Positions 7,801 to 56,800 of a stretch of 64,000 nucleotides of DNA are shown in pieces. Position numbers and translations under genes: made by a program. The DNA lies in NCBI RefSeq assembly GCF_016433145.1, contig NC_058131.1, positions 405,326,875-405,390,874 of the forward strand, read 5' to 3'. The stretch is from Gracilinanus agilis (Eukaryota). Under the pieces are notes generated by a model that made no database searches, was not told the DNA's origin, and worked only from the letters and a program-made list of their open reading frames with translations. Numbering within the stretch: the first letter of the stretch is position 1; each line of letters starts with the position of its first letter.

Positions 7801-8533
7801 AGGTAATTGGGTTGTGATTATGACATCATAATAAGCTCAGCTCTTCCTTTCCAACGGCCCCCCACCCTTTCCCCCCACATTCGAAAAGAGCCGCCCTTCG
7901 GACTCGAGTCTCTATCAAGCCCTTTTAAAATTCTTTGTGTAGTAGGGATCAGTCCTAAGGAAGACCTTCTTTGTCCATATATCTGCAGTAGTCAGGGAAA
8001 GGGAAGGGGTATTCTTTCACCAAAGATACAAGATTTCTGGCTTAGAAATAACAGGTTAACTAAGAAAGGCCTAGAATGAAAGGAGTTAAAATAGAGGAAA
8101 AGGACAAGAGATGGGATTTGAGACTGCCAAGGCAAATAAGAAATGAATCCATAGCCATTTCATCAGAGAGGTAAAGCAAAGGAGGGCAGCAGATTTTAAA
8201 AATACTCAAGTCTGAGCTGACCAGAAATAGTTTTCCATTGCAGGTTAGTAAGTCTGTAAAAGAGAATTAAGGGGGGAATGGGGGAGTAAGGTAGGATGCT
8301 AAGCTAAGTAGGGAGCATTTTCTTCATTAAGGGGCAATGGTGGTCTTGCCACAGAGAGCTGAGTAGCACTTCTGGGCTTTAGGAACCAACTTCCTAAAGC
8401 CTTTATAGTCTCTGCACACTCAGCACCCCCCAACATTGGAAGTGGTAGGTAGCTTTGATCCCACAAGTACTACAGTCAGTGACAGGAAGCTTCCAGCTGG
8501 AGCCAAGGAAGCAAGGTGGTAAGAGCCAACAAG

Positions 8534-11500
8534 TCAAACTGAAAAGAGAGAGGGGAGGGAGATTGGGGCCATTTTCAAGAGGAAGGTAGGCAACAGCTAT
8601 GTTGTTCCTGTTTTTCTCAAGAGGTAGGCTAGCTTGGAAGTAAGATAGCACTCATTAGGGTCTTTATTTTGCCCTCTTCCCCACTCCTGGGGAAAAAAAA
8701 AAGATAACCACAAATGCTTTATAACAGAAAGTAAATCACAGTAGAGATCAGACCGTAAAATTTTAAATAAACAATTCTACCTAAAGCTTAAGAGAGTAGG
8801 CTTGTAGATCATGTAACTTTATGAAACAGAAGCTAAAATTAGGGCTCTAATTGAGACTTCCCCCTCTCTCCCACCTGCCTTGCTTAACTTTATAGTTAAA
8901 CCTTCCTATGAGTGCACCATTAGCTTGTTTCCAAAAAAAAAAAAAAGAAAACTCTAGTTCCTAGTTTACCACCTTGACCCCACCCCAGGTTTTCATCCTA
9001 ATATTTATAGACCTGCTTTGAACCTAGCCTTAATTCATCTATATTCATTATGAAATATACCTACATCTGAAAGAGAAGTCATTTGATACTATTCCCACAG
9101 GCCTCATCAGAGGCACCTACCCAAGTTCTCATTTGGTGTTGATCTAGATTCCACAGGGGACTCAGAACACTGAGCTAAGTCTTTCAAGAAGCCATCCGAA
9201 GAGTCTGAATCCATGGTCCCTGAAAGATTCTCTACTCCTTGCCTAGCAAAGGAGTATTTTATCAGAAGAGGTGGAAGCAGGATATACCAAGACCAACTCA
9301 GATACATTTTCTATGTAGACTAGCTATTGTCAGAACTGGAAGTGAAAAAAGAGAGACCTTTGCTCTAGTCCTTTCTTTCACCTTATATCCTAGGCCCCTG
9401 CCAAGGGAAGAGAAGATTTAGAACTCAAATCCCACAACTCATTGTACCCAGGTACAAGAAAAACATACATTACTCTCCCTGTACAACAAGGCTGACTGGG
9501 GGGGTCCCAAGCATGTAGGGCTCGTCTCCACTGCCTAATCTGGGCATCCCAGGAACGGCGGCTGTACCTTCGGTTCTTGTTAGGTGTTTGAGGGTGAAGT
9601 CCTGGCTGCCGTTCTGACCTAGAGATAAAATGAAGATCTTAAACTATGCCCTAGAAACAGCTGGATACGGCTCAGTATTCCTGTATCATTGACATGGTTG
9701 AGACTTAGCTAACAGAAAAAGAAAGAATTCTTTAGGATTGTTAGACATCATTAATAATTGTTTGCAGGACTGACTTTAGAACAGTATTCTTAAAAAAAAA
9801 AAAACAGATTGAAAAGCTGAAAGAGACCTTTTAGACCAAATCCCTCATTCTCCCATTGATGAATATCCCATATCTCATACCTAGAATATATTCCCATCTC
9901 ATCACTGCTTCTTAGACTCCCTAATTTCCTTCAAAGCAAAGTTCAAAGATCATCTTTAAATGAGGTTTTCATCCCCTCAATTTCCCCCACTAAAAAAAAA
10001 TCTTACCTTGTATATTTGTATGCATATGTCTTCTTCAGAACATAAGGCTCTTGAGGGAAGAAGGTACTGTTTTGTTTCTAATACATAGCAGGCACTAAAC
10101 ACTTGCTGATTAGTTAACTGATTTATGAACAAGATCACACAGGTTATAGTAAACAGCCAGAATGTGAACCCAGGTCAAAATATATCTTTCTAAATATCAT
10201 CTTGCTTGCAAGGTTGAACCCCTCCAAAATGCCTTCCCTTACTGAGGAATAATAATGGAATGACTCATTCAAAGTCTGAGAGAAGAGACAGATGAATCTT
10301 GTAAAGTTTTCTCCTAAAAAACATTTTTTTAAATTTTTTTTAAACCCTCAACTTCTGAGTATTGGCTCCTAGGTGGAAGAGTGGTAAGGGTGGGCAATGG
10401 GGGTCAAGTGACTTGCCCAGGGTCACAAGCTGGGAAGTGCTAAAAAACATTTTTAAATGGAAGACTGCTCATATGGATGCAGAAAGGCAAGTGGTAAGAA
10501 TGTCCAGGAAGAAAAGGTAGCCATTGACAGGATCAGAAAAAAAAAAATTATAGGCCAAGTAGAATGCTTAAATAATATTAAATGGGGCAGCTGGGTAGCT
10601 CAGTGGATTGAGAGCCAGGCCTAGAGACTGGAGGTCCTAGGTTCAAATCCGGCCTCAGACACTTCCCAGCTGTGTGACCCTGGGCAAGTCACTTGACCCC
10701 CATTGCCTACCCTTACCACTCTTCCACCTATAAGTCAATACATAGAAGTTAAGGGTATAAAAATAAAAAAATAAAAAAAAAATTAAATGATAGGCTAATG
10801 TTTTTTAAAGCATTCTAATACAAATTGATAACTTGGTATTAACTGATAACTATTCATGTTTAGAGACGTCGACTCCCATTCTTCAAATGATAAATGCTAC
10901 CCATCCCCAAACCCTCTGCTCTTACTTAGGGACTTGCTGTAAGAAGCACTGGTAACCAGCTGTTCGTTTCCCATAGTCTATCTGTTTTTGCCTCCTTCGA
11001 AGAACAATCTCATCCGTTTCTACCTCCTGCCTGTGGAGAAATAAATGTCCTATAGGCTATGACAAATGTAAAATATTTTAAAACACATTTCATTACACTG
11101 GAGGCTAACTCACTTGGATCTTCTGTAGCTGGATTCTGTGCTCACTCCCACACTCACCATCTTCACTCCAGAAGAATTCCCAAACTCAAGCATCTTCTTT
11201 CTGGAGACAAGGGTTCTATATAAGTAAAGAAGGTAGGAGAATGCCTAGGGAGCTGCTCTGCCTTTTCCAAAGCCAGGCATCCTCACTTAGATCCCAGACA
11301 GCCAGATTGAGTGTCTTTATCTCTAACACACCTTCTACAATCAAAAAAAGGTTCAATAAGTAACAAATGGATTTACATTTAAATTTTTTATTAAGTACCT
11401 ACTATATGTAGAATTCAATGCTTGGTCTTGGGGGAGATCGAGTTCAGATAAGACACAATCTCTGCCTTCAGGAAGTTTTAAACCAGTCTAGTAGGGGGAC

Positions 11501-11707
11501 GCAAACACAAAGATAATCATACACAATACCATACGTGATTCACAGAGCAAAATCGAAAGATCAGGGTATGTAGTTGAACTTGGATAGAGGACAGGAAAAG
11601 CACTTCGTTCCCCAGCTCCTCTCCAAGGAAAGGATGGGAAACCCTCAAACTTAAATGCGCACCTCTCCTCCCCACCTGGGGTTCCAAAGGTAGATTCTCC
11701 ATTTCAT
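8534..11707 (-). CDS. SLBP2: Oocyte-type histone RNA stem-loop binding protein 2 (SLBP paralogue); 7 candidate coding exons, ~187 aa in the simplest model
   Basis: Spliced exons 11030-10926 and 9618-9469 encode [72 protein letters not shown], a complete SLBP RNA-binding domain. Flanking phase-compatible exons: 11707-11676, 11334-11287, 11215-11114, 9242-9121, and a last acceptor at 8538. The N- and C-terminal exons are less certain. Confidence 0.88.
9121..9242 (-). CDS. SLBP2: SLBP2 acidic post-RBD exon
   Basis: 122 nt, acceptor CCTTTGCTAG, donor G|GTAGGT; [40 protein letters not shown] (part of ORF 9107-9307). Confidence 0.75.
9469..9618 (-). CDS. SLBP2: SLBP2 RBD exon 2
   Basis: Acceptor TTTTATCTCTAG; [43 protein letters not shown]...; donor GTATGT at 9468 gives 150 nt, phase 2-2 (a weaker GTAATG lies 5 nt upstream). 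Confidence 0.92.
10331..10439 (-). mobile_element. 5'-truncated tRNA-derived SINE (SINE1_Mdo-like)
   Basis: 3' half of the SINE, with TSD CTAAAAAACATTTTT (10314 / 10440). Confidence 0.8.
10584..10792 (+). mobile_element. Young SINE (SINE1_Mdo-like)
   Basis: GGGGCAGCTGGGTAGCTCAGTGG...GGTTCAAATCC, poly(A) tail. Confidence 0.9.
10926..11030 (-). CDS. SLBP2: SLBP2 RBD exon 1
   Basis: 105 nt, acceptor TTTCTCCACAG, donor GTAAG; [35 protein letters not shown]. Confidence 0.95.
11114..11215 (-). CDS. SLBP2: SLBP2 exon upstream of the RBD
   Basis: 102 nt, acceptor TATAG, donor GTGAGT; [34 protein letters not shown], in frame with the RBD exon. Confidence 0.8.
11287..11334 (-). CDS. SLBP2: SLBP2 candidate 48-nt exon
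   Basis: Polypyrimidine acceptor TTTTTTTGATTGTAG, donor GTGAGG; phase 2-2, open ([16 protein letters not shown]). Confidence 0.55.
11676..11707 (-). CDS. SLBP2: SLBP2 candidate first coding exon ([11 protein letters not shown])
   Basis: ATG at 11707 with A at -3; donor AG|GTGGGG at 11675 gives phase 2, the only local frame that stays open into the downstream exons. Confidence 0.45.
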
Positions 11708-11899
11708 TGTATCACCTCGCAGAGCACAAAAGTGAGACGTTCGTGCATTAGATGGGAAGGCGAAAAGAGGAGGAAAAAAAAAAAAAACCCAGGACGCCTC
11801 ACAGGTACTTACCTGATTTTTTTTTCCCCAGGTACGGTTCAAAAGACGTGAACTCTAGGTGGGGTGAGGGAGAATTTAAATCTCCCGGGGTGGGAGGTG

Positions 11900-12410
11900 T
11901 GGGAAGGGCCAAGGCCAGGCTGACCCGGTGAAAAGCCAAAGCATGAGCCAATCATGTATCTGAGTTCCCAAGTAGGCGGAGCTTAGCTCCGGTCACGGGG
12001 CCCGCTACGTGGAAGCCTATCCGCTGCCGCTTCGCTCTTGCTTGGAAGACGCGCCCAATTCTGTGTCCTGCCCGTGGATTGGGTTTGGGTTCTGCCCAGC
12101 GGCAGGTGACGTCATAGCAAGCGGGTCTATGGGATAGAAGATTGGCTGAGGTGCGAGCGACGTAGGGGGTTGACCGGAGGCGCGCGAGGATTGGCCCGGA
12201 GGTGGGCGGGCTGAAGGTTTGAACTTTATGTCGCGAGCTGTTAGGTTGACTGTGTCCCTTCGCAGACTTCAGTGCTTCCTTAGAGGGCCTTGAAGAGAAG
12301 GGGCACGGGTCCCACACTCGCTCTTGTCAGCTACTTCCCGCAGAAATTGTCCCTCTTTTTGCGTCCAAATCACCCCTACAGGCTCTCCCATTCCCTGGCG
12401 GAAGCAGGTA
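11900..12410. promoter_or_regulatory. CDC25C: Bidirectional CpG-island promoter of CDC25C (+) and SLBP2 (-), including CDC25C non-coding exon 1
   Basis: CCAAT/ATTGG boxes at 11948, 12055, 12078, 12141 and 12190; CRE TGACGTCA 12107-12114; CHR TTTGAA 12218-12223; + donor CAG|GTATGT at 12408; - donor CAG|GTAAGT at 11812. Confidence 0.85.
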
Positions 12411-46504: not shown

Positions 46505-47048
46505 AGAAGGAAAGAAGGAAGGAAGGAAGGAAGGAAGGAAGGAAGGAAGGAAGGAAGNNNNNNNNNNNNNNNNNNNNNNNNNNNNNNNNNNNNNNNNNNN
46601 NNNNNNNNNNNNNNNNNNNNNNNNNNNNNNNNNNNNNNNNNNNNNNNNNNNNNNNNNNNNNNNNNNNNNNNNNNNNNNNNNNNNNNNNNNNNNNNNNNNN
46701 NNNNNNNNNNNNNNNNNNNNNNNNNNNNNNNNNNNNNNNNNNNNNNNNNNNNNNNNNNNNNNNNNNNNNNNNNNNNNNNNNNNNNNNNNNNNNNNNNNNN
46801 NNNNNNNNNNNNNNNNNNNNNNNNNNNNNNNNNNNNNNNNNNNNNNNNNNNNNNNNNNNNNNNNNNNNNNNNNNNNNNNNNNNNNNNNNNNNNNNNNNNA
46901 GAAAGNNNNNNNNNNNNNNNNNNNNNNNNNNNNNNNNNNNNNNNNNNNNNNNNNNNNNNNNNNNNNNNNNNNNNNNNNNNNNNNNNNNNNNNNNNNNNNN
47001 NNNNNNNNNNNNNNNNNNNNNNNNNNNNNNNNNNNNNNNNNNNNNNNG
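46505..47048. repeat. (AAGG)n microsatellite running into an N gap (46558-47048, with an AGAAAG island at 46900-46905)
   Basis: Directly visible; the repeat grows from the tail of the SINE at ~46355-46505. Confidence 0.9.
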
Positions 47049-50800: not shown

Positions 50801-53800
50801 GACAGAAGGTTAAGGTGTATTTAAAAAAAGAAAAAGAAAGGGTATGTTCAGTTTAGTGACTTTGGTAATAAAATTCCAAATTGTTTTCCATAATACTTGG
50901 GTCAATTCTCAGCTTTACCAACAATGTATTAGTATGTATAAATACATAGAATCCACGAATATCAGAGACCTTTCAATATCATAGACTTGAGGATATCCAC
51001 TAATTTGTAGAAATGCAGCCTAGAATAGTAGGCGGAAAAAACCCTGAACTGAGCAGAGGGAATTGAAACAGTGTGAGGGACTTGGCATATAAAGCCTTTG
51101 TTATCCCATGTTGAGAAGATCTAGGAAGGGCAAGAAGGAAATGACAATTGGATTCCTCCTCCTCCTCCTTCCTTCAGCTACAGAGGGAGGAAATTCACTA
51201 TTGCCAGCATTTAGCACCCCACCTCTGGTATTTAGTCTTCCATTTTGGGGGCTGGAGACATTTTCAGATTGCTTTCAATTGAAGGCCCAGAACCAGTCTG
51301 TATACCTACTTAATCTTCCAAAGAACTAGGGTTTTCTTTCTTGCCTTCATGTTTCTGATGCTGCCAATCATAACTTAAGCATGGTCCTGCTATCACTCAC
51401 ATTCTCCACGGTGAATAGCAGTGTCCTTAGACTTGGGTTATTCTGGAATGCTCTCTCTGCATCTGCTCCATGACAAGGAATCTGTCTCAAGATCCTGACT
51501 CTTGGTGATTTAAGCCCTCTTCTGCTTTTCTTTGTGGTACCTACAGGATCCTCACCTCTGGTCTCTTTTTATCTCCTTGGTCTCTTTTTTATCACCATTT
51601 TTATATATAACTTAATGTGTCCCCCACATTCCTACCTGTTTGGTTCTTTCAGATTGCTTCCCTACCTCTCTTATCAGCCCTCACCTGGTATCTCTCCCCA
51701 AGCAGGAGACCTCTCTACCATGGATAGCATGGCTATGGGTAACTGCATCCACGCCAGAAAACTGTGCCTGGCTGATTCCACTTGTAGCACCCCCTTCCTC
51801 TACTTGGAAACCTGCTTTCCTTTCATGACCTCCACTCCTCAGAAGCCTGAAAAGCAGGAGAGTTGCCTGGAGGCAGCACAACAGCTCAAGAACAGCTCCC
51901 TGAGCAGCTGCAGATGCTATTGGCGCATGAAGAATCAGGACACCTGCCTGGCAATCTACTGGACCATCCACTCTACTTTTGGCTTTGGTGAGTCTCTTAT
52001 GTGGATAGGGACAGGGGGCTGGGTTCAGGGAATTCTCCCTAGTTCTACAGGATGCCAAGGGTATGGTAGAAATATGATGGCTGAAGAGGCCTGCATTGTC
52101 TTTAATCATTCTTATGGGCCCCCAGTATACTGCTCTCTTTTCCTAGCTCTCCTGGCCCTAGAGAATGACCCTGGTGAAGTGAATGTCTGACCCAGTTCTT
52201 ACTGTAGCGGTTCTCGCCCTGGGGTGCCTCCAAGCTCTATGGGAAGGTAGTGCACATTCCCAAAGACTGATGTAGAAGTTATACAGAGTTGCACAGTATC
52301 AGCAAGTCCAGAGTGATGCAGGACAGACAGAATGAGTACTCAGACAGTGTCCTGGCAGAGGCCCCAGGAAGCTTGGCACTGCTATTGATATTCAGGCTAC
52401 TCATTAACCAGGAGAGAGAAAGACAAAGATAAGGCACATGGGAAAAGCTTTTCAGGAGAAGAGCAAAATGGAGTCTCTCCTTGTTCTTTTTGGGGAATAC
52501 CCTTCTCTGATCCCTTTCTCCATTATAATCACCACGTTTCTTGGGAGGGATATACCCCCAAAGATCTTTTTGAGTACTAGATCCTTTCTTCCCCATCTCC
52601 CCTTCCCATTTACTTAGGGGAGAGGGGCAGGCAGGGACAACTGTTTCTCTTCTGGTACTCACTACTTTTTCTATTGATCTGGCCTATCTTTTGCCAGATG
52701 CTGAAATTACACTCCCAGTGCCCTGCTGGGTCATGCTCACCTGCCCTTACATTCTTCTTATGGATCACAGGGTTATGGATTTAGGGCTGGAAGGATATAG
52801 TTCATCCTATCCCACATTAGACATATAATTATAAGGCAAGGCAGTCTGTTTCTCTGGTGCCTTTCCCCAGACTTTTTCTGTTAGGGTTTTGCTGTCATTT
52901 ACCCCTCCCAAGTCAGACCCCATTTCTTCTTCCTTATCATGGGACACTTTCCCTAGTCAATTAGCCTCCTTTCTAGAAGCTCAGGCTGAAGACTGTTCCT
53001 TCCTCCATAGAAAAAAACAACTATGTCCTTTTTCCTATTGTTTCTTTCCCCCATAGAAAAATACAGCATCTCCTGGTCCCCAACAAGTCACATAAATGCC
53101 TCTTGGCCAGAGAATCCAACCTGCCCCTTCCTTGTCAACTTCTGCCTGTAGTCTCCTTCTGGCTGGATCAGGTTCTAGGTCTTAACTCATTTTAAGTCTG
53201 AGCTGTCATCCCCCCCATCCCCTCATCTAAGTCCCACCCTGCCATGGTTTATAGGTCTCTGATGTTTTCACCTCTTTTTTTTCTAGGTGACTATGATCTG
53301 GGGGGCTCGCCATATAAAGAAATTGTGATCAGCAAACCTTGGAAATTTAATCACCTGCATTTAGACAAGTTTGAATCAGGTGTGTGGATCTAGGCAGGGG
53401 CTGGGGAGATGGAAGCTTGAACTGGGTATTAGGGGAGTGGGGGAGAATCCTTATTCTTTGCTTATAACATAAGGGATTCCAAGCCAAGGGAGGCAAAGGG
53501 CTCTTTGTATCTGTCAGGATGGCAGATGGAGCTGTTTGGAATGTCCTAGTCACAGTGCAATCACACATAGACACAGACACACACACACACACACCACACA
53601 CACAATGATTGTTGAGGGAGACAGACTAAAACCATTTGTCCCTCAGGTTCATATAGTGAAGGGAACTCAAGGGCATGGTAGGTGTGACATCAGCTCCCAA
53701 ATGAGTGAGGTAATTAACTATCATCCTGGGCATCTTGGAAAATTCTCTGTGTTCCCCACAGAGTTGAAAAGGTTTTCAGATATGGGGAAAGAGGAGAGAA

Positions 53801-56800
53801 AACTAGTAAAAATAGTCTATGCCTATATGACTCATAGGTCTAGATCTGGAAGAGACCTAAGAAATCGTCTAGTCCAACCCACTCACATTTTACAGAGGGG
53901 GAAACTGAGTTCCCTGGAAATTAGGTGACCTGCTGAGGGTCATACAGGTAGTAAGCATCAGAAGCGTGAATTTGAACCCATGTTCTAGTGCTTGTTCACA
54001 CTAAGCCACATTGCCTTTTCATATTAAAGAATCATTAGGAGCAGCCTGGTACATGCAAAAGGAATGTTAGATTTGGAATCAGGGAACCTGGGCTGCAGTC
54101 TTAGCTCTGCCATCCTTTGGTAAGTCACCTACCTGTGTCAGCTCTCTTTTCTTTTTTAAACCCTCTTTTAAAAAACTCTTACCTTTTGACTTAGCATCAT
54201 TTCTAAGACAGAATATTGGCAAGAGCTGGACAATCAGAGTTTAGTACCCAGCTAGAAAGTATCTGAGGCTAGATTCAAACTCTGGTCCTCCTGAATGAAG
54301 GCCTGGCACTCTATCCACTGTGCTACCTAGCTGCCCCTCAGCCTTACTTTTCTCATATACAAATTGAAGGTTCTGAACCAGATGACCTCTGAAATCTGTT
54401 CTACCTCTAAATCTATGACCATGGGGTGTGTTACAGAAGTGGAAGGTGATGGTATTTGGATTTTTAAATTAGGGTAAAGGTATGACAGAGTTGAGAACAG
54501 GTTTGGAAATGTTCAAACAGAGCCTAGAAGAACCAAACAGGGCTATGACCTGTGCTAAATCTCTATCTGGAACCTATGCTCATTCTTATTACCTCTTTTT
54601 TTTTTAAACTCTTACCTTCTATCTTAGAATCAGTATTGCATACCTGTTCCAAGACAAAAGAGCTGTAAGGGCTAGGCAATTAAGGTTAAATGATTTGCCC
54701 AGTGTCATACAGCTAGAACATGTCTCTGGCCAGGTTTGAACCCAGGAAGGGGGAAGAGCTGGCACCTGCTTTTGTGTCTAAGCAGTCTTTAGGGAAGCTT
54801 ATGGGTAGTTCGAGTTACAAACAGTGAGTAGCTTGTTGGGAGGACTGGAGGCTATGTTGGGTGTCAGGGCTCCAAGTGGGTTGAAAGAGAACTTAGGTTC
54901 CAGTACCGTCAAGGTGAAGGGTTAATATAGACATCAGACACTGGGTGGGTGCTAGGGAGGGCTGAGACCTATATTTGGGAGAGGAGGAGGATTCTGGGTG
55001 GTTGGCAGCACCATGTCCAGTTTCCTGGTATAGGAGAAGAATAGTAGGGGATTGCTGCCCTTCTCTCCTAGGTTCCCAGAGCCACGATCTTTGCCTGAAG
55101 TCTACCACTCTGTGCACCCTGAATGACAAATGTAACAAGTTGCGCCTGGCCTATGGAGAGGTCTGCTCAGTGGCTAATTGCCAGCCCCTAAAGTGCCAGG
55201 AGGAGCTCCGGGTCTTCTTTGAGCAGGTGGCAGACCACTATGCACAGGCACTTCTATTCTGCCCTTGTGACAATGGAGATGATGTCTGTGGGGCACGACG
55301 GCGCAACACTATTGCCCCCAGCTGTGCTTCTCCAATACGTGATCTCCCCAACTGCCTGATGCTTTGGAACACCTGCCTTCAAGACTTTCTCTGCAGGTGG
55401 GTCTGACCTTATGGGGCAGAAGGAGACCTTGTTCCTCTGCCTTTCAAGAAATGTCTTTTCATTGATCACCTAGATCTGCCCAGAGGAGAAGTATATTAGT
55501 AGGTATATCCCTATAGTTCTATAAATTAATGGTGGTTTATAATAGTTAATAATTTGCATTAATAGTTAATAGTTTGAGTAGATTTTCTATGGCAAATTTT
55601 TTTCAAGTTTGCATTGTCTTTAAAAAAAACTTCCCCCGCCTTTTTTTCAATTACATATAGAAACAATTTTTGACAAATTGATATTTTGAGATTCAGATTC
55701 CCTCTTCCCTCCACCCACCTCAGATGGCAAATAGTCTGTCTGATATAGGTTATGCCAGTGCTTTTGTTGAATATATATTTCCATATTCCCCATGCTGTGA
55801 CAGAAGAAACATATACGTACAATTATTTGAAAAAAAAAAAACTTGTGGAGTAAATAAAGTGAAAGATGGCATCCTTTAATTCCAACAAAATTCTGACTAT
55901 GGATAGCATTTATCATGTCTGTTGGGGTTAATCTTGGGTTTTGTTTTTTTTATGACAATAGTTTAATCCTTCACAGTTGACCATTGCACAATATTTCCTT
56001 TATTGTATGCAGTGTTCTGGTTCTGCTCCCTTCACTTTTCATCAGTTCTTATAAGTCTTTTCAGGTTTTTCTGAACTCATCCTTTTCATTATTTCTTATG
56101 GCACAATAGTATTCCATTATAGTCATATATCACAACTTATTCAGTATGGCAAATTTTTGATCCTAGTCTGGCTTTCTTGTACCTCTTCCCTCAGAGAATG
56201 ACACTAAGAGGTATTAGAAAGGGAAATCTCTAAGCAAACCAATTCTATTACATTCATTCTAAAGACAAATTCAAATGAGACTAGTGGTATTCTCTCTATC
56301 TGCCCCCATATTACATCCTAAGGATTTTTAAAAAATTCTGGTCTTTTGAGGGGCTCTGGAGGGGAACCAACATAAACTTATCATTGGGTTCCCAAATTCT
56401 GAGAATTCTTTATAAGAATTTGAAGAATAAAAGTGCCCTTCACCATTTCCTTCCCTAGGTTCCTGTCCCTTGCCCTTCTCCCTCCACACTCCCATTTCCT
56501 TTCTCAAGGTAATATTCGATTCTATAAATTTAATTCCCACTAAGACTAGGAATTCATTGATGCTAGACCTCTTCCCAACTCTGATTTTTTTTTCAACCAC
56601 AACACCCTACTTTTCCAGAGTTGTCTCAGTTCCCAAACTTTCCCTTTTTTCCAGATCCCGCCTGGCTGATTTTCAGATGTATTGCTATCACATGGACCCT
56701 CCAGGGACCTGTGTGGAGAGGCATTCTAGTAGATGCCTGAAGGCATATATGGGGTTAATTGGTAAGACCAAAAGGACAGGTACCTAGAAGAGAGACATTT

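Follow-up and report, generated by a model that had tools for sequence, protein, structure and literature searches.

We show that the RNA-binding domain (RBD) of an SLBP2 gene in the stretch of DNA analysed here, 64,000 nucleotides from the Gracilinanus agilis genome (the window), is under strong purifying selection, and that this selection went on after lesions at the 3' end of the gene, shared with Monodelphis, had arisen. Judging from its exons, SLBP2 in the opossum lineage has probably been reduced to this selected core, with a product of about 153 aa and both ends decayed. The first-pass annotation of the window had proposed a hidden marsupial SLBP2 with an intact RBD. The SLBP2 identity of the gene and the intactness and constraint of its RBD stand, whereas novelty in marsupials and intactness outside the RBD do not, which corrects the idea that this gene is intact. 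As an unannotated didelphid orthologue added to a small and little-studied family, the gene itself is a correct but largely ordinary identification.

The RNA-binding domain and the exon model

Joined in frame, the minus-strand exons at 11030-10926 and at 9618-9469 encode a 72-aa SLBP RBD running from ETDEIV to WDPP, as had been read from the letters alone. Both halves score above the curated cut-off (27 bits) of the 70-position Pfam profile PF15247 (SLBP_RNA_bind): the first exon covers profile positions 1-30 (40.9 bits, E = 2e-10), with the domain beginning at 11020, and the second, which also encodes a short linker, covers positions 33-70 (57.0 bits, E = 2e-15), with the domain ending at 9498. 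The TPNK, YGK and YSRR motifs and the conserved Trp and His residues are all present. The human SLBP structures 4L8R and 4QOZ match the domain at E = 9e-18, with the equivalents of Thr171 and Arg181 kept; in the alignment with 4L8R chain C, the window segment that holds the TPNK threonine and the base-specific Arg lies opposite HPKTPNKFKKYSRRSWD (the roles of human Thr171, the TPNK threonine, and Arg181 are taken from PMC10388802). Since the sequence matches solved SLBP structures, we regard the SLBP fold predicted for this domain as settled. The full domain is open and under constraint.

The five minus-strand exons initially proposed have AG acceptors and GT donors throughout and keep a single frame open for 175 codons. 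Among the three outside the RBD, 11215-11114 and 9242-9121 (the penultimate exon) are homologous to SLBP2 exons of Petaurus and Monodelphis, whereas 11334-11287, although open in frame, matches no part of any SLBP2 protein, gives a poor alignment between species and was dropped from the coding model. The initial set also missed the true ancestral first coding exon, whose relic (MENLPLEPQ...) was located at 11702-11663 on the minus strand by tblastn with the Petaurus protein P0160. A possible non-coding first exon, of putative usage, lies at 11890-11813 on the same strand, with a donor CAG/GTAAGT at the exon end, 11813; by tblastn it is homologous to exon 1 of P0164, an old gene model from Monodelphis, it holds no ATG, and it falls where the gene and CDC25C share a head-to-head region. 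The upstream frame that P0164 opens (MSSTPGDLN...) was considered and rejected: the window lacks an ATG at this place, and an A-run of different length shifts the phase. This part was treated as 5' UTR.

The most likely start codon is the internal ATG at 11193-11191, in the exon 11215-11114 that also encodes the VSVGVSTE motif; the predicted product from this start is about 153 aa long and begins MLEFGNSS. This ATG has an A at position -3 and matches the start used in the Monodelphis, Sarcophilus, Antechinus and Notamacropus models. The ATG of the relic exon 11702-11663, if that exon is still spliced in, opens a short out-of-frame ORF ahead of the main start. Downstream, the splice sites of the first RBD exon are identical in Monodelphis, Antechinus and Petaurus; the presumed donor of the second, AAT/GTATGT at 9469/9468, is weak. 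The last exon spans 8538-8479 (minus strand), and the current frame ends within it at the TGA 8536-8534.

Decay at both ends and selection on the core

The gene as a whole is not intact: its start exon is frameshifted, and its C-terminal module is out of frame and bears stops. The relic start exon is 40 nt long, versus 44 nt in Petaurus and whale, and this 4-nt deletion puts the ME[NH]LP start out of frame with the next exon, so that splicing the two yields only a 30-aa peptide. Monodelphis keeps the 44 nt but has AT in place of the GT donor, and Antechinus has ACG in place of the ATG. At the other end, the second RBD exon lacks one T between 9490 and 9489, a deletion common to Monodelphis, and a four-species alignment shows that the ancestral splice donor at 9442-9441 (minus strand) is gone, with CA/GTGAGT in Petaurus versus CA/ATGAGT in the window and Monodelphis. 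In the penultimate exon, the conserved TGG encoding the Trp of D-W-L, a residue conserved from Xenopus to whale, has become TTAG at 9178-9175, a +1 frameshift again common to Monodelphis, downstream of which the old frame remains recognisable. The ancestral frame of the last exon is likewise still readable and then runs into TGA (8478-8476) and TAG (8472-8470); a Trp codon of this exon is now TGA. The last-exon TGA is common to the window and Monodelphis, and the window alone carries the TAG. The C-terminal module (D-W-L ... QF..L ... PWL ... HW.Y) is therefore not in frame in the window, a lineage-specific loss that leaves orthology unaffected.

The RBD shows a different pattern. A dN/dS comparison across marsupial orthologues, which the first-pass annotation had suggested as a check, places this domain well below 1. 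Against Antechinus and Petaurus, dN/dS is 0.085-0.14, with dS close to intron divergence, and on the window's own branch there are four synonymous changes and one non-synonymous change (P = 0.01). Between the window and Monodelphis, nine synonymous and two non-synonymous changes are found (dN/dS 0.055, P = 4.5e-5 against neutrality), where an intron divergence of 0.10 predicts about 16 non-synonymous changes for a neutral RBD. At the protein level, 2/72 residues differ in the RBD and 7/80 in the rest (Fisher p = 0.11), which is only suggestive; the comparison at the DNA level replaces it. The tail after the RBD has a dN/dS of about 1.2-1.4 between the two opossums, near 1, the change counts outside the RBD being small.

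The strongest competitor to a selected core is a unitary pseudogene in slow decay, in which a useful protein ended in the didelphid ancestor and the RBD exons happen not to have been hit yet. Frame-disrupting lesions lie in the first, fourth, fifth and last exons, four in all and all outside the RBD; no SLBP2 protein is called at the locus in the Monodelphis assembly annotation, and protein database searches returned no didelphid RefSeq SLBP2 protein. The four lesions and the missing Monodelphis call would both fit a pseudogene call by annotation pipelines, and the tail dN/dS points the same way, as does the repeated loss of SLBP2 in mammals (PMC7226043), the gene being a pseudogene in human, mouse and rabbit (PMC7226043, PMC6239174). 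The weak donor of the second RBD exon, together with the loss of the ancestral one, also speaks against a selected core, and so would the short upstream ORF of the relic start exon if that exon is still used. However, the two didelphids that differ by only two non-synonymous RBD changes already share the 3' lesions, far fewer changes than neutrality predicts, and the 153-codon frame is free of stops and indels in both the window and Monodelphis. We consider slow decay unlikely on this balance.

It is very improbable that the gene is a full-length SLBP2 of the Xenopus, bovine or Petaurus type, with the lesions being assembly errors or spliced around. The single frame open across the five initial exons could be read in this way, and an extra 3' exon brings the old model P0164 of Monodelphis back into the conserved last exon. 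In the window, however, this route (extra exon, acceptor near 8686, into the last exon) is blocked by stops, the start exon is 4 nt short and two Trp codons have turned into TTAG and TGA. The 3' lesions recur identically in the independent Monodelphis assembly and hence are not assembly errors.

A trimmed but selected SLBP2 remains our preferred reading, and a working model can be proposed by analogy with the SLBP2 of Xenopus, zebrafish and cow. In this opossum-family lineage, the N-terminal exon and the C-terminal module have fallen out of frame, most probably leaving a product made of the VSVGVSTE motif, the complete RBD and a short unconstrained tail. In oocytes, this product would bind replication-dependent histone mRNAs at their 3' stem-loop, via the contact of the Arg181 equivalent to G7 and via the TPNK threonine, and would keep these mRNAs stored; storage is proposed because the product is without the parts of SLBP1 on which processing and translation depend. 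Maternal histone-mRNA storage may be retained, as the first-pass annotation had suggested for metatherians. A bolder possibility, which we hold at somewhat less than even, is that didelphid SLBP2 is a natural minimal SLBP2, in which only the VSVGV motif and the RBD have been kept for tens of millions of years after the termini were lost, with dasyurids eroding the same termini independently. Were this the case, the oocyte function would require no more than occupancy of the stem-loop, and some reproductive strategies could do without the C-terminal module, which may serve in degradation or partner binding. Our knowledge of histone mRNA control is unchanged by these results. What they offer is a constrained RBD from which both conserved ends have been discarded, marking the essential part of SLBP2, and a natural truncation series, with full length in Petaurus and Dromiciops and truncation in opossums and dasyurids.

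SLBP2 identity, locus and earlier annotation

The gene belongs to SLBP2, not SLBP1, on the evidence of phylogeny, synteny and motif content. Its RBD falls inside the mammalian SLBP2 clade (SH-aLRT 98 in one tree, 99/99 in another), SLBP1-type sequences form a separate group in 97% of bootstrap trees, and forcing the window into that group costs 27.7 lnL and is rejected (AU p = 0.016). The VSVGVxTE motif, found in 83/140 SLBP2-type and 0/43 SLBP1-type proteins, is present upstream of the RBD as VSVGVSTE, and the RBD is 97% identical to that of the Monodelphis SLBP2-like gene. A recent duplicate or retrocopy of SLBP1, the placement that the first-pass annotation had named as fatal to its claim, could appeal to the ~65-70% of RBD residues shared with human SLBP, but it is already refuted by the tree and AU test, the SLBP2-only motifs, introns at positions shared with the SLBP2 of other mammals, and synteny kept in other marsupials and whale.

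The placement between FAM53C and CDC25C is borne out by an ORF with a FAM53 domain at 1345-2151 on the minus strand and by CDC25C exons from 14784 to ~34.9 kb on the plus strand. The order CDC25C-SLBP2-FAM53C is found in the window, Antechinus and Petaurus; SLBP2 adjoins CDC25C in whale (locus L003), and its exons lie upstream of FAM53C in Monodelphis and Dromiciops. The window gene, adjoining both neighbours, occupies the ancestral position with CDC25C and FAM53C on either side. A published figure of the Zmat2 locus draws both Fam53c and Slbp2 for the species compared (PMC7255616).

A marsupial SLBP2 is not in itself a discovery, as the annotation of at least seven marsupials and of both monotremes already includes an SLBP2-like protein. 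There are RefSeq/Ensembl models for Monodelphis, Sarcophilus, Antechinus, Petaurus, Notamacropus, Phascolarctos and Vombatus, and for platypus and echidna, under the names 'oocyte-specific histone RNA stem-loop-binding protein 2-like' or 'Histone RNA hairpin-binding protein'. No SLBP2 protein is on record for the Gracilinanus agilis genome, our search of the open literature found nothing linking SLBP2 to marsupials, and the matching Logan contigs, checked for marsupial transcripts, included none from a marsupial.

Comparison with known SLBP proteins

The window gene resembles Xenopus xSLBP2 and zebrafish Slbp2 in RBD subtype (the [A/M] variable position), in the N-terminal VSVGV.TE and in paralogue clade. 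Frog SLBP2, however, is ~243-286 aa long with a conserved C-terminal tail, whereas the window product is predicted at ~153 aa with the tail out of frame. Oocyte expression and histone storage have been shown for frog and fish SLBP2 (Xenopus, Wang et al. 1999, as cited in PMC6239174; zebrafish, PMC6239174); bovine SLBP2 goes back to Thelie et al. 2012, as cited in PMC7226043 and PMC6239174.

Among mammals, the eutherian SLBP2 represented by whale is an orthologue at the same CDC25C-adjoining locus with the same exon layout and an RBD ~90% identical to that of the window, but it keeps the MEHLP... start exon and the D-W-L/QF..L/PWL tail, the reading frames of which the window has lost. The SLBP2-like genes of Petaurus, Notamacropus, Phascolarctos, Vombatus and Dromiciops (the last from exons found here, at a locus with no gene called) are closer still, with RBDs identical to the window at 66-70 of 72 positions and the same splice sites; they keep the full architecture, and the window and Monodelphis do not. 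The two opossums also have TPNK where Australidelphians have TPDK. In Antechinus, the start codon, a donor and the last exon have been lost as well, via mutations other than those of the window. Human SLBP (SLBP1; 4L8R/4QOZ) is of the same PF15247 fold family, with the TPNK threonine and the Arg181 equivalent found in the window too, but it is a different paralogue: the window protein is without its long N-terminal region and its SWDQQ/KVALHF signature. The SLBP2 pseudogenes of human, mouse and rabbit, relics compared here by way of the literature, are the same gene in lineage-specific decay, whereas the RBD exons of the window are open and constrained.

The SLBP2 gene and its locus

We read the minus strand of window 8400-12000 for the exon structure of SLBP2. 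The five exons named in the first-pass annotation all carry AG acceptors and GT donors, with one frame open over 175 codons; the exon at 11334-11287 does keep the frame open, but no SLBP2 protein contains a counterpart of it, so we reject it as coding; any use of it would probably be as 5' UTR. The two exons of the RNA-binding domain (RBD; minus strand, 11030-10926 and 9618-9469) join as originally described into a 72-aa domain running from ETDEIV to WDPP. In Pfam, they match positions 1-30 (40.9 bits) and 33-70 (57.0 bits) of PF15247 (SLBP_RNA_bind), so that each half exceeds the curated cut-off of 27 bits, and both also match the RBD of Drosophila SLBP and the solved RBD of human SLBP (4L8R/4QOZ; E = 9e-18 for the second half). 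The TPNK and YSRR motifs noticed initially are kept: the TPNK threonine aligns with human Thr171, and the second arginine of YSRR with human Arg181, which makes the sole base-specific contact of human SLBP, to G7 of the stem-loop (PMC10388802). TPNK is also kept in Monodelphis, monotremes, and the eutherians compared (P0165, P0166, P0179), and TPDK takes its place in all Australidelphian SLBP2 seen, namely Antechinus, Sarcophilus, Petaurus, Notamacropus, koala, wombat, and Dromiciops (loci L001, L002, and L005, and proteins P0003, P0151, and P0160-P0163). The intron between the RBD exons holds two MIR-like SINE core copies (...GTCACACAGCTGGGAAGTGTCTGAGGCCGGATTTGAACC...) in opposite orientation, at 10740-10590 and 10440-10380; the Monodelphis locus also has a similar copy, at another position (L004:16419-16559).

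A FAM53-domain ORF (minus strand, 1345-2151, by domain match) lies on one side of the gene and the plus-strand coding exons of CDC25C on the other, recognized by sequence from the N-terminus (MSGTPFRS..., from 14784) to the catalytic motif at about 34.7 kb. SLBP2 therefore sits between FAM53C and CDC25C, as first annotated, and head to head with CDC25C. Two further plus-strand ORFs with GFRA-type GDNF/GAS1 domain matches (51.5-55.4 kb; window 51534-55403) are consistent with GFRA3 downstream of CDC25C, as in the human gene order. The order CDC25C-SLBP2-FAM53C recurs in Antechinus and Petaurus; SLBP2 adjoins CDC25C in blue whale (L003), and in Monodelphis and Dromiciops its exons are located upstream of FAM53C. 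PMC7255616 draws both Fam53c and Slbp2 in its figure of the Zmat2 locus. Window 11869-12250, between the 5' end of SLBP2 and CDC25C, shares about 76% identity with Antechinus; with one TGACGTCA and one TTTGAA element along with several CCAAT/ATTGG boxes, it fits a predicted shared bidirectional promoter of cell-cycle type. Two N runs of 342 and 142 bases, six bases apart, occupy 46558-47047.

With the 49-aa exon as query, 1.84 billion representative proteins yielded 120 matches at E <= 1e-10. Among the best were Monodelphis domestica F7CY79 (public name "Histone RNA hairpin-binding protein") and models from Sarcophilus, koala, and wombat; matches from Antechinus, Petaurus, Notamacropus, platypus, echidna, and many eutherians are named [quoted passage not shown]. 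The plain name "histone RNA hairpin-binding protein" belongs to proteins bearing the SWDQQ signature, which are SLBP1. In RBD trees of 173 rows (98 SH-aLRT) and 53 rows (99/99 support), the window falls inside the mammalian SLBP2-like clade, beside Monodelphis and other marsupials. Membership in the SLBP1 clade, the outcome that the first-pass annotation had set against its SLBP2 assignment, is rejected, since constraining the window to one clade with SLBP1-type rows costs 27.7 log-likelihood units (AU p = 0.016). The motif VSVGV.TE just upstream of the RBD, present in the window, occurs in 83 of 140 SLBP2-type proteins versus none of 43 of SLBP1 type. Taken together, trees, AU test, motif, and gene order make the orthology to SLBP2 secure.

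Lesions outside the RNA-binding domain

The RBD is intact, as originally described, but its flanks are not, and there alignment with Antechinus, Petaurus, and Monodelphis DNA (and whale for some exons) reveals four kinds of lesion. The ancestral first coding exon (MENLPLEPQ..., ME[NH]LP in eutherians), located by homology at 11702-11663 on the minus strand, has 40 nt versus 44 nt in Petaurus and whale. It thus no longer fits the phase of the exon that follows, and a transcript including it would encode a peptide of 30 aa. Monodelphis keeps the 44 nt with AT as donor, and Antechinus has ACG for ATG plus a 2-nt deletion, so this exon has been disabled in three different ways. Directly after WDPPSQ, one T is lost between 9490 and 9489, and the Petaurus donor CA|GTGAGT reads CA|ATGAGT at 9442-9441; the 1-nt deletion, combined with an alternative donor (AAT|GTATGT at 9469/9468), returns the next exon to its ancestral frame, and P0164, the old Monodelphis gene model, uses the same junction. 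In the penultimate exon, TGG has become TTAG (9178-9175), a +1 frameshift that removes the tryptophan of the D-W-L motif conserved from Xenopus to whale. The old frame of the last exon is still recognizable, followed by TGA at the position of a Petaurus tryptophan and then TAG; the frame now read stops at TGA 8536-8534.

The linker/donor lesions, the TTAG frameshift, and the last-exon TGA recur unchanged in the independent Monodelphis assembly, hence they are real and older than the split of the two opossums. The whole architecture survives in Dromiciops and diprotodonts, from which we infer that the marsupial ancestor had it. In Dromiciops (L005:1900-5450), tblastn exons lack stops in their aligned coding parts and the penultimate exon has a 12-nt in-frame deletion. 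Decay in Antechinus is parallel to that of opossums yet independent; there (L001:9800-12500), TT stands in place of the Petaurus-type donor, translation of the last exon gives F-I-stop, and the RefSeq protein has 122 aa, RBD only.

Selection and the predicted product

The Nei-Gojobori dN/dS ratio over the 72 RBD codons is 0.098 for window versus Antechinus, 0.142 for window versus Petaurus, and 0.085 for Antechinus versus Petaurus, with dS (0.28-0.41) close to intron divergence (0.23-0.42). On the window's own branch, with whale as outgroup, the RBD has four synonymous changes and one non-synonymous (binomial P = 0.01). The decisive pair is window versus Monodelphis, the sole other didelphid compared by DNA, as both already carried the common 3' lesions (intron divergence 0.10). 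Here, the RBD has nine synonymous and two non-synonymous changes (dN/dS 0.055, P = 4.5e-5), whereas the respective counts, all small, are 1 and 2 for the N-terminal stretch from ATG to RBD (about 0.5), 1 and 5 for the post-RBD tail (about 1.4), and 1 and 4 for the relic last exon (about 1.2). The marsupial comparison suggested initially thus yields RBD ratios of 0.055-0.142 for the window, not near 1, and the RBD is under strong purifying selection after loss of the ends while the tail is not. This constraint argues against a dead gene, despite its lesions, and for a selected protein built on the RBD core.

Translation of this protein likely begins at 11193, the first ATG leading into the RBD (AAGAAGATGC); models from Monodelphis, Sarcophilus, Antechinus, and Notamacropus begin at the same conserved codon. 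From there, a protein of 153 aa is predicted, with MLEFGNSS... at its N-terminus, followed by VSVGVSTE, the RBD, and a tail of about 50 residues that ends in ...NENLV. The start-side exon choice and the AAT|GTATGT donor after the second RBD exon are likewise predictions.

Relation to known SLBP2 proteins

The SLBP2 family is described in PMC7226043 (with Thelie 2012 as cited there), along with its distribution among eutherians and its repeated loss in mammals, and SLBP2-like models of other marsupials and monotremes already exist in RefSeq, Ensembl, or UniProt; the window gene is therefore a further SLBP2 of known type, correctly identified and unannotated in this genome. Database searches gave no SLBP2 protein for this genome or any didelphid except the Ensembl-derived Monodelphis model, the annotations call no gene at the Monodelphis (L004:2300-5500) and Dromiciops (L005:1900-5450) loci where all SLBP2 exons are present, and our search of the open literature found no paper linking SLBP2 to marsupials. 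Of modest interest is that opossums, and by different mutations dasyurids, show erosion of both termini around an RBD core that stays constrained.

The window RBD is of SLBP2 type and keeps under constraint the residues that human SLBP uses for stem-loop recognition. As summarized in PMC6239174 and PMC7226043, Xenopus SLBP2 is oocyte-specific, binds histone mRNA without supporting its processing or translation, and is broken down at maturation, with SLBP1 then taking its place. That loss of the C-terminal module alters such turnover in opossums is speculation. Histone storage in zebrafish needs maternal Slbp2 (PMC6239174), and bovine SLBP2 protein is found in oocytes as well as in embryos that have yet to activate their genome (PMC7226043). 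By analogy, the opossum protein would work as SLBP2 does in Xenopus, zebrafish, and cattle, by occupying the stem-loop.
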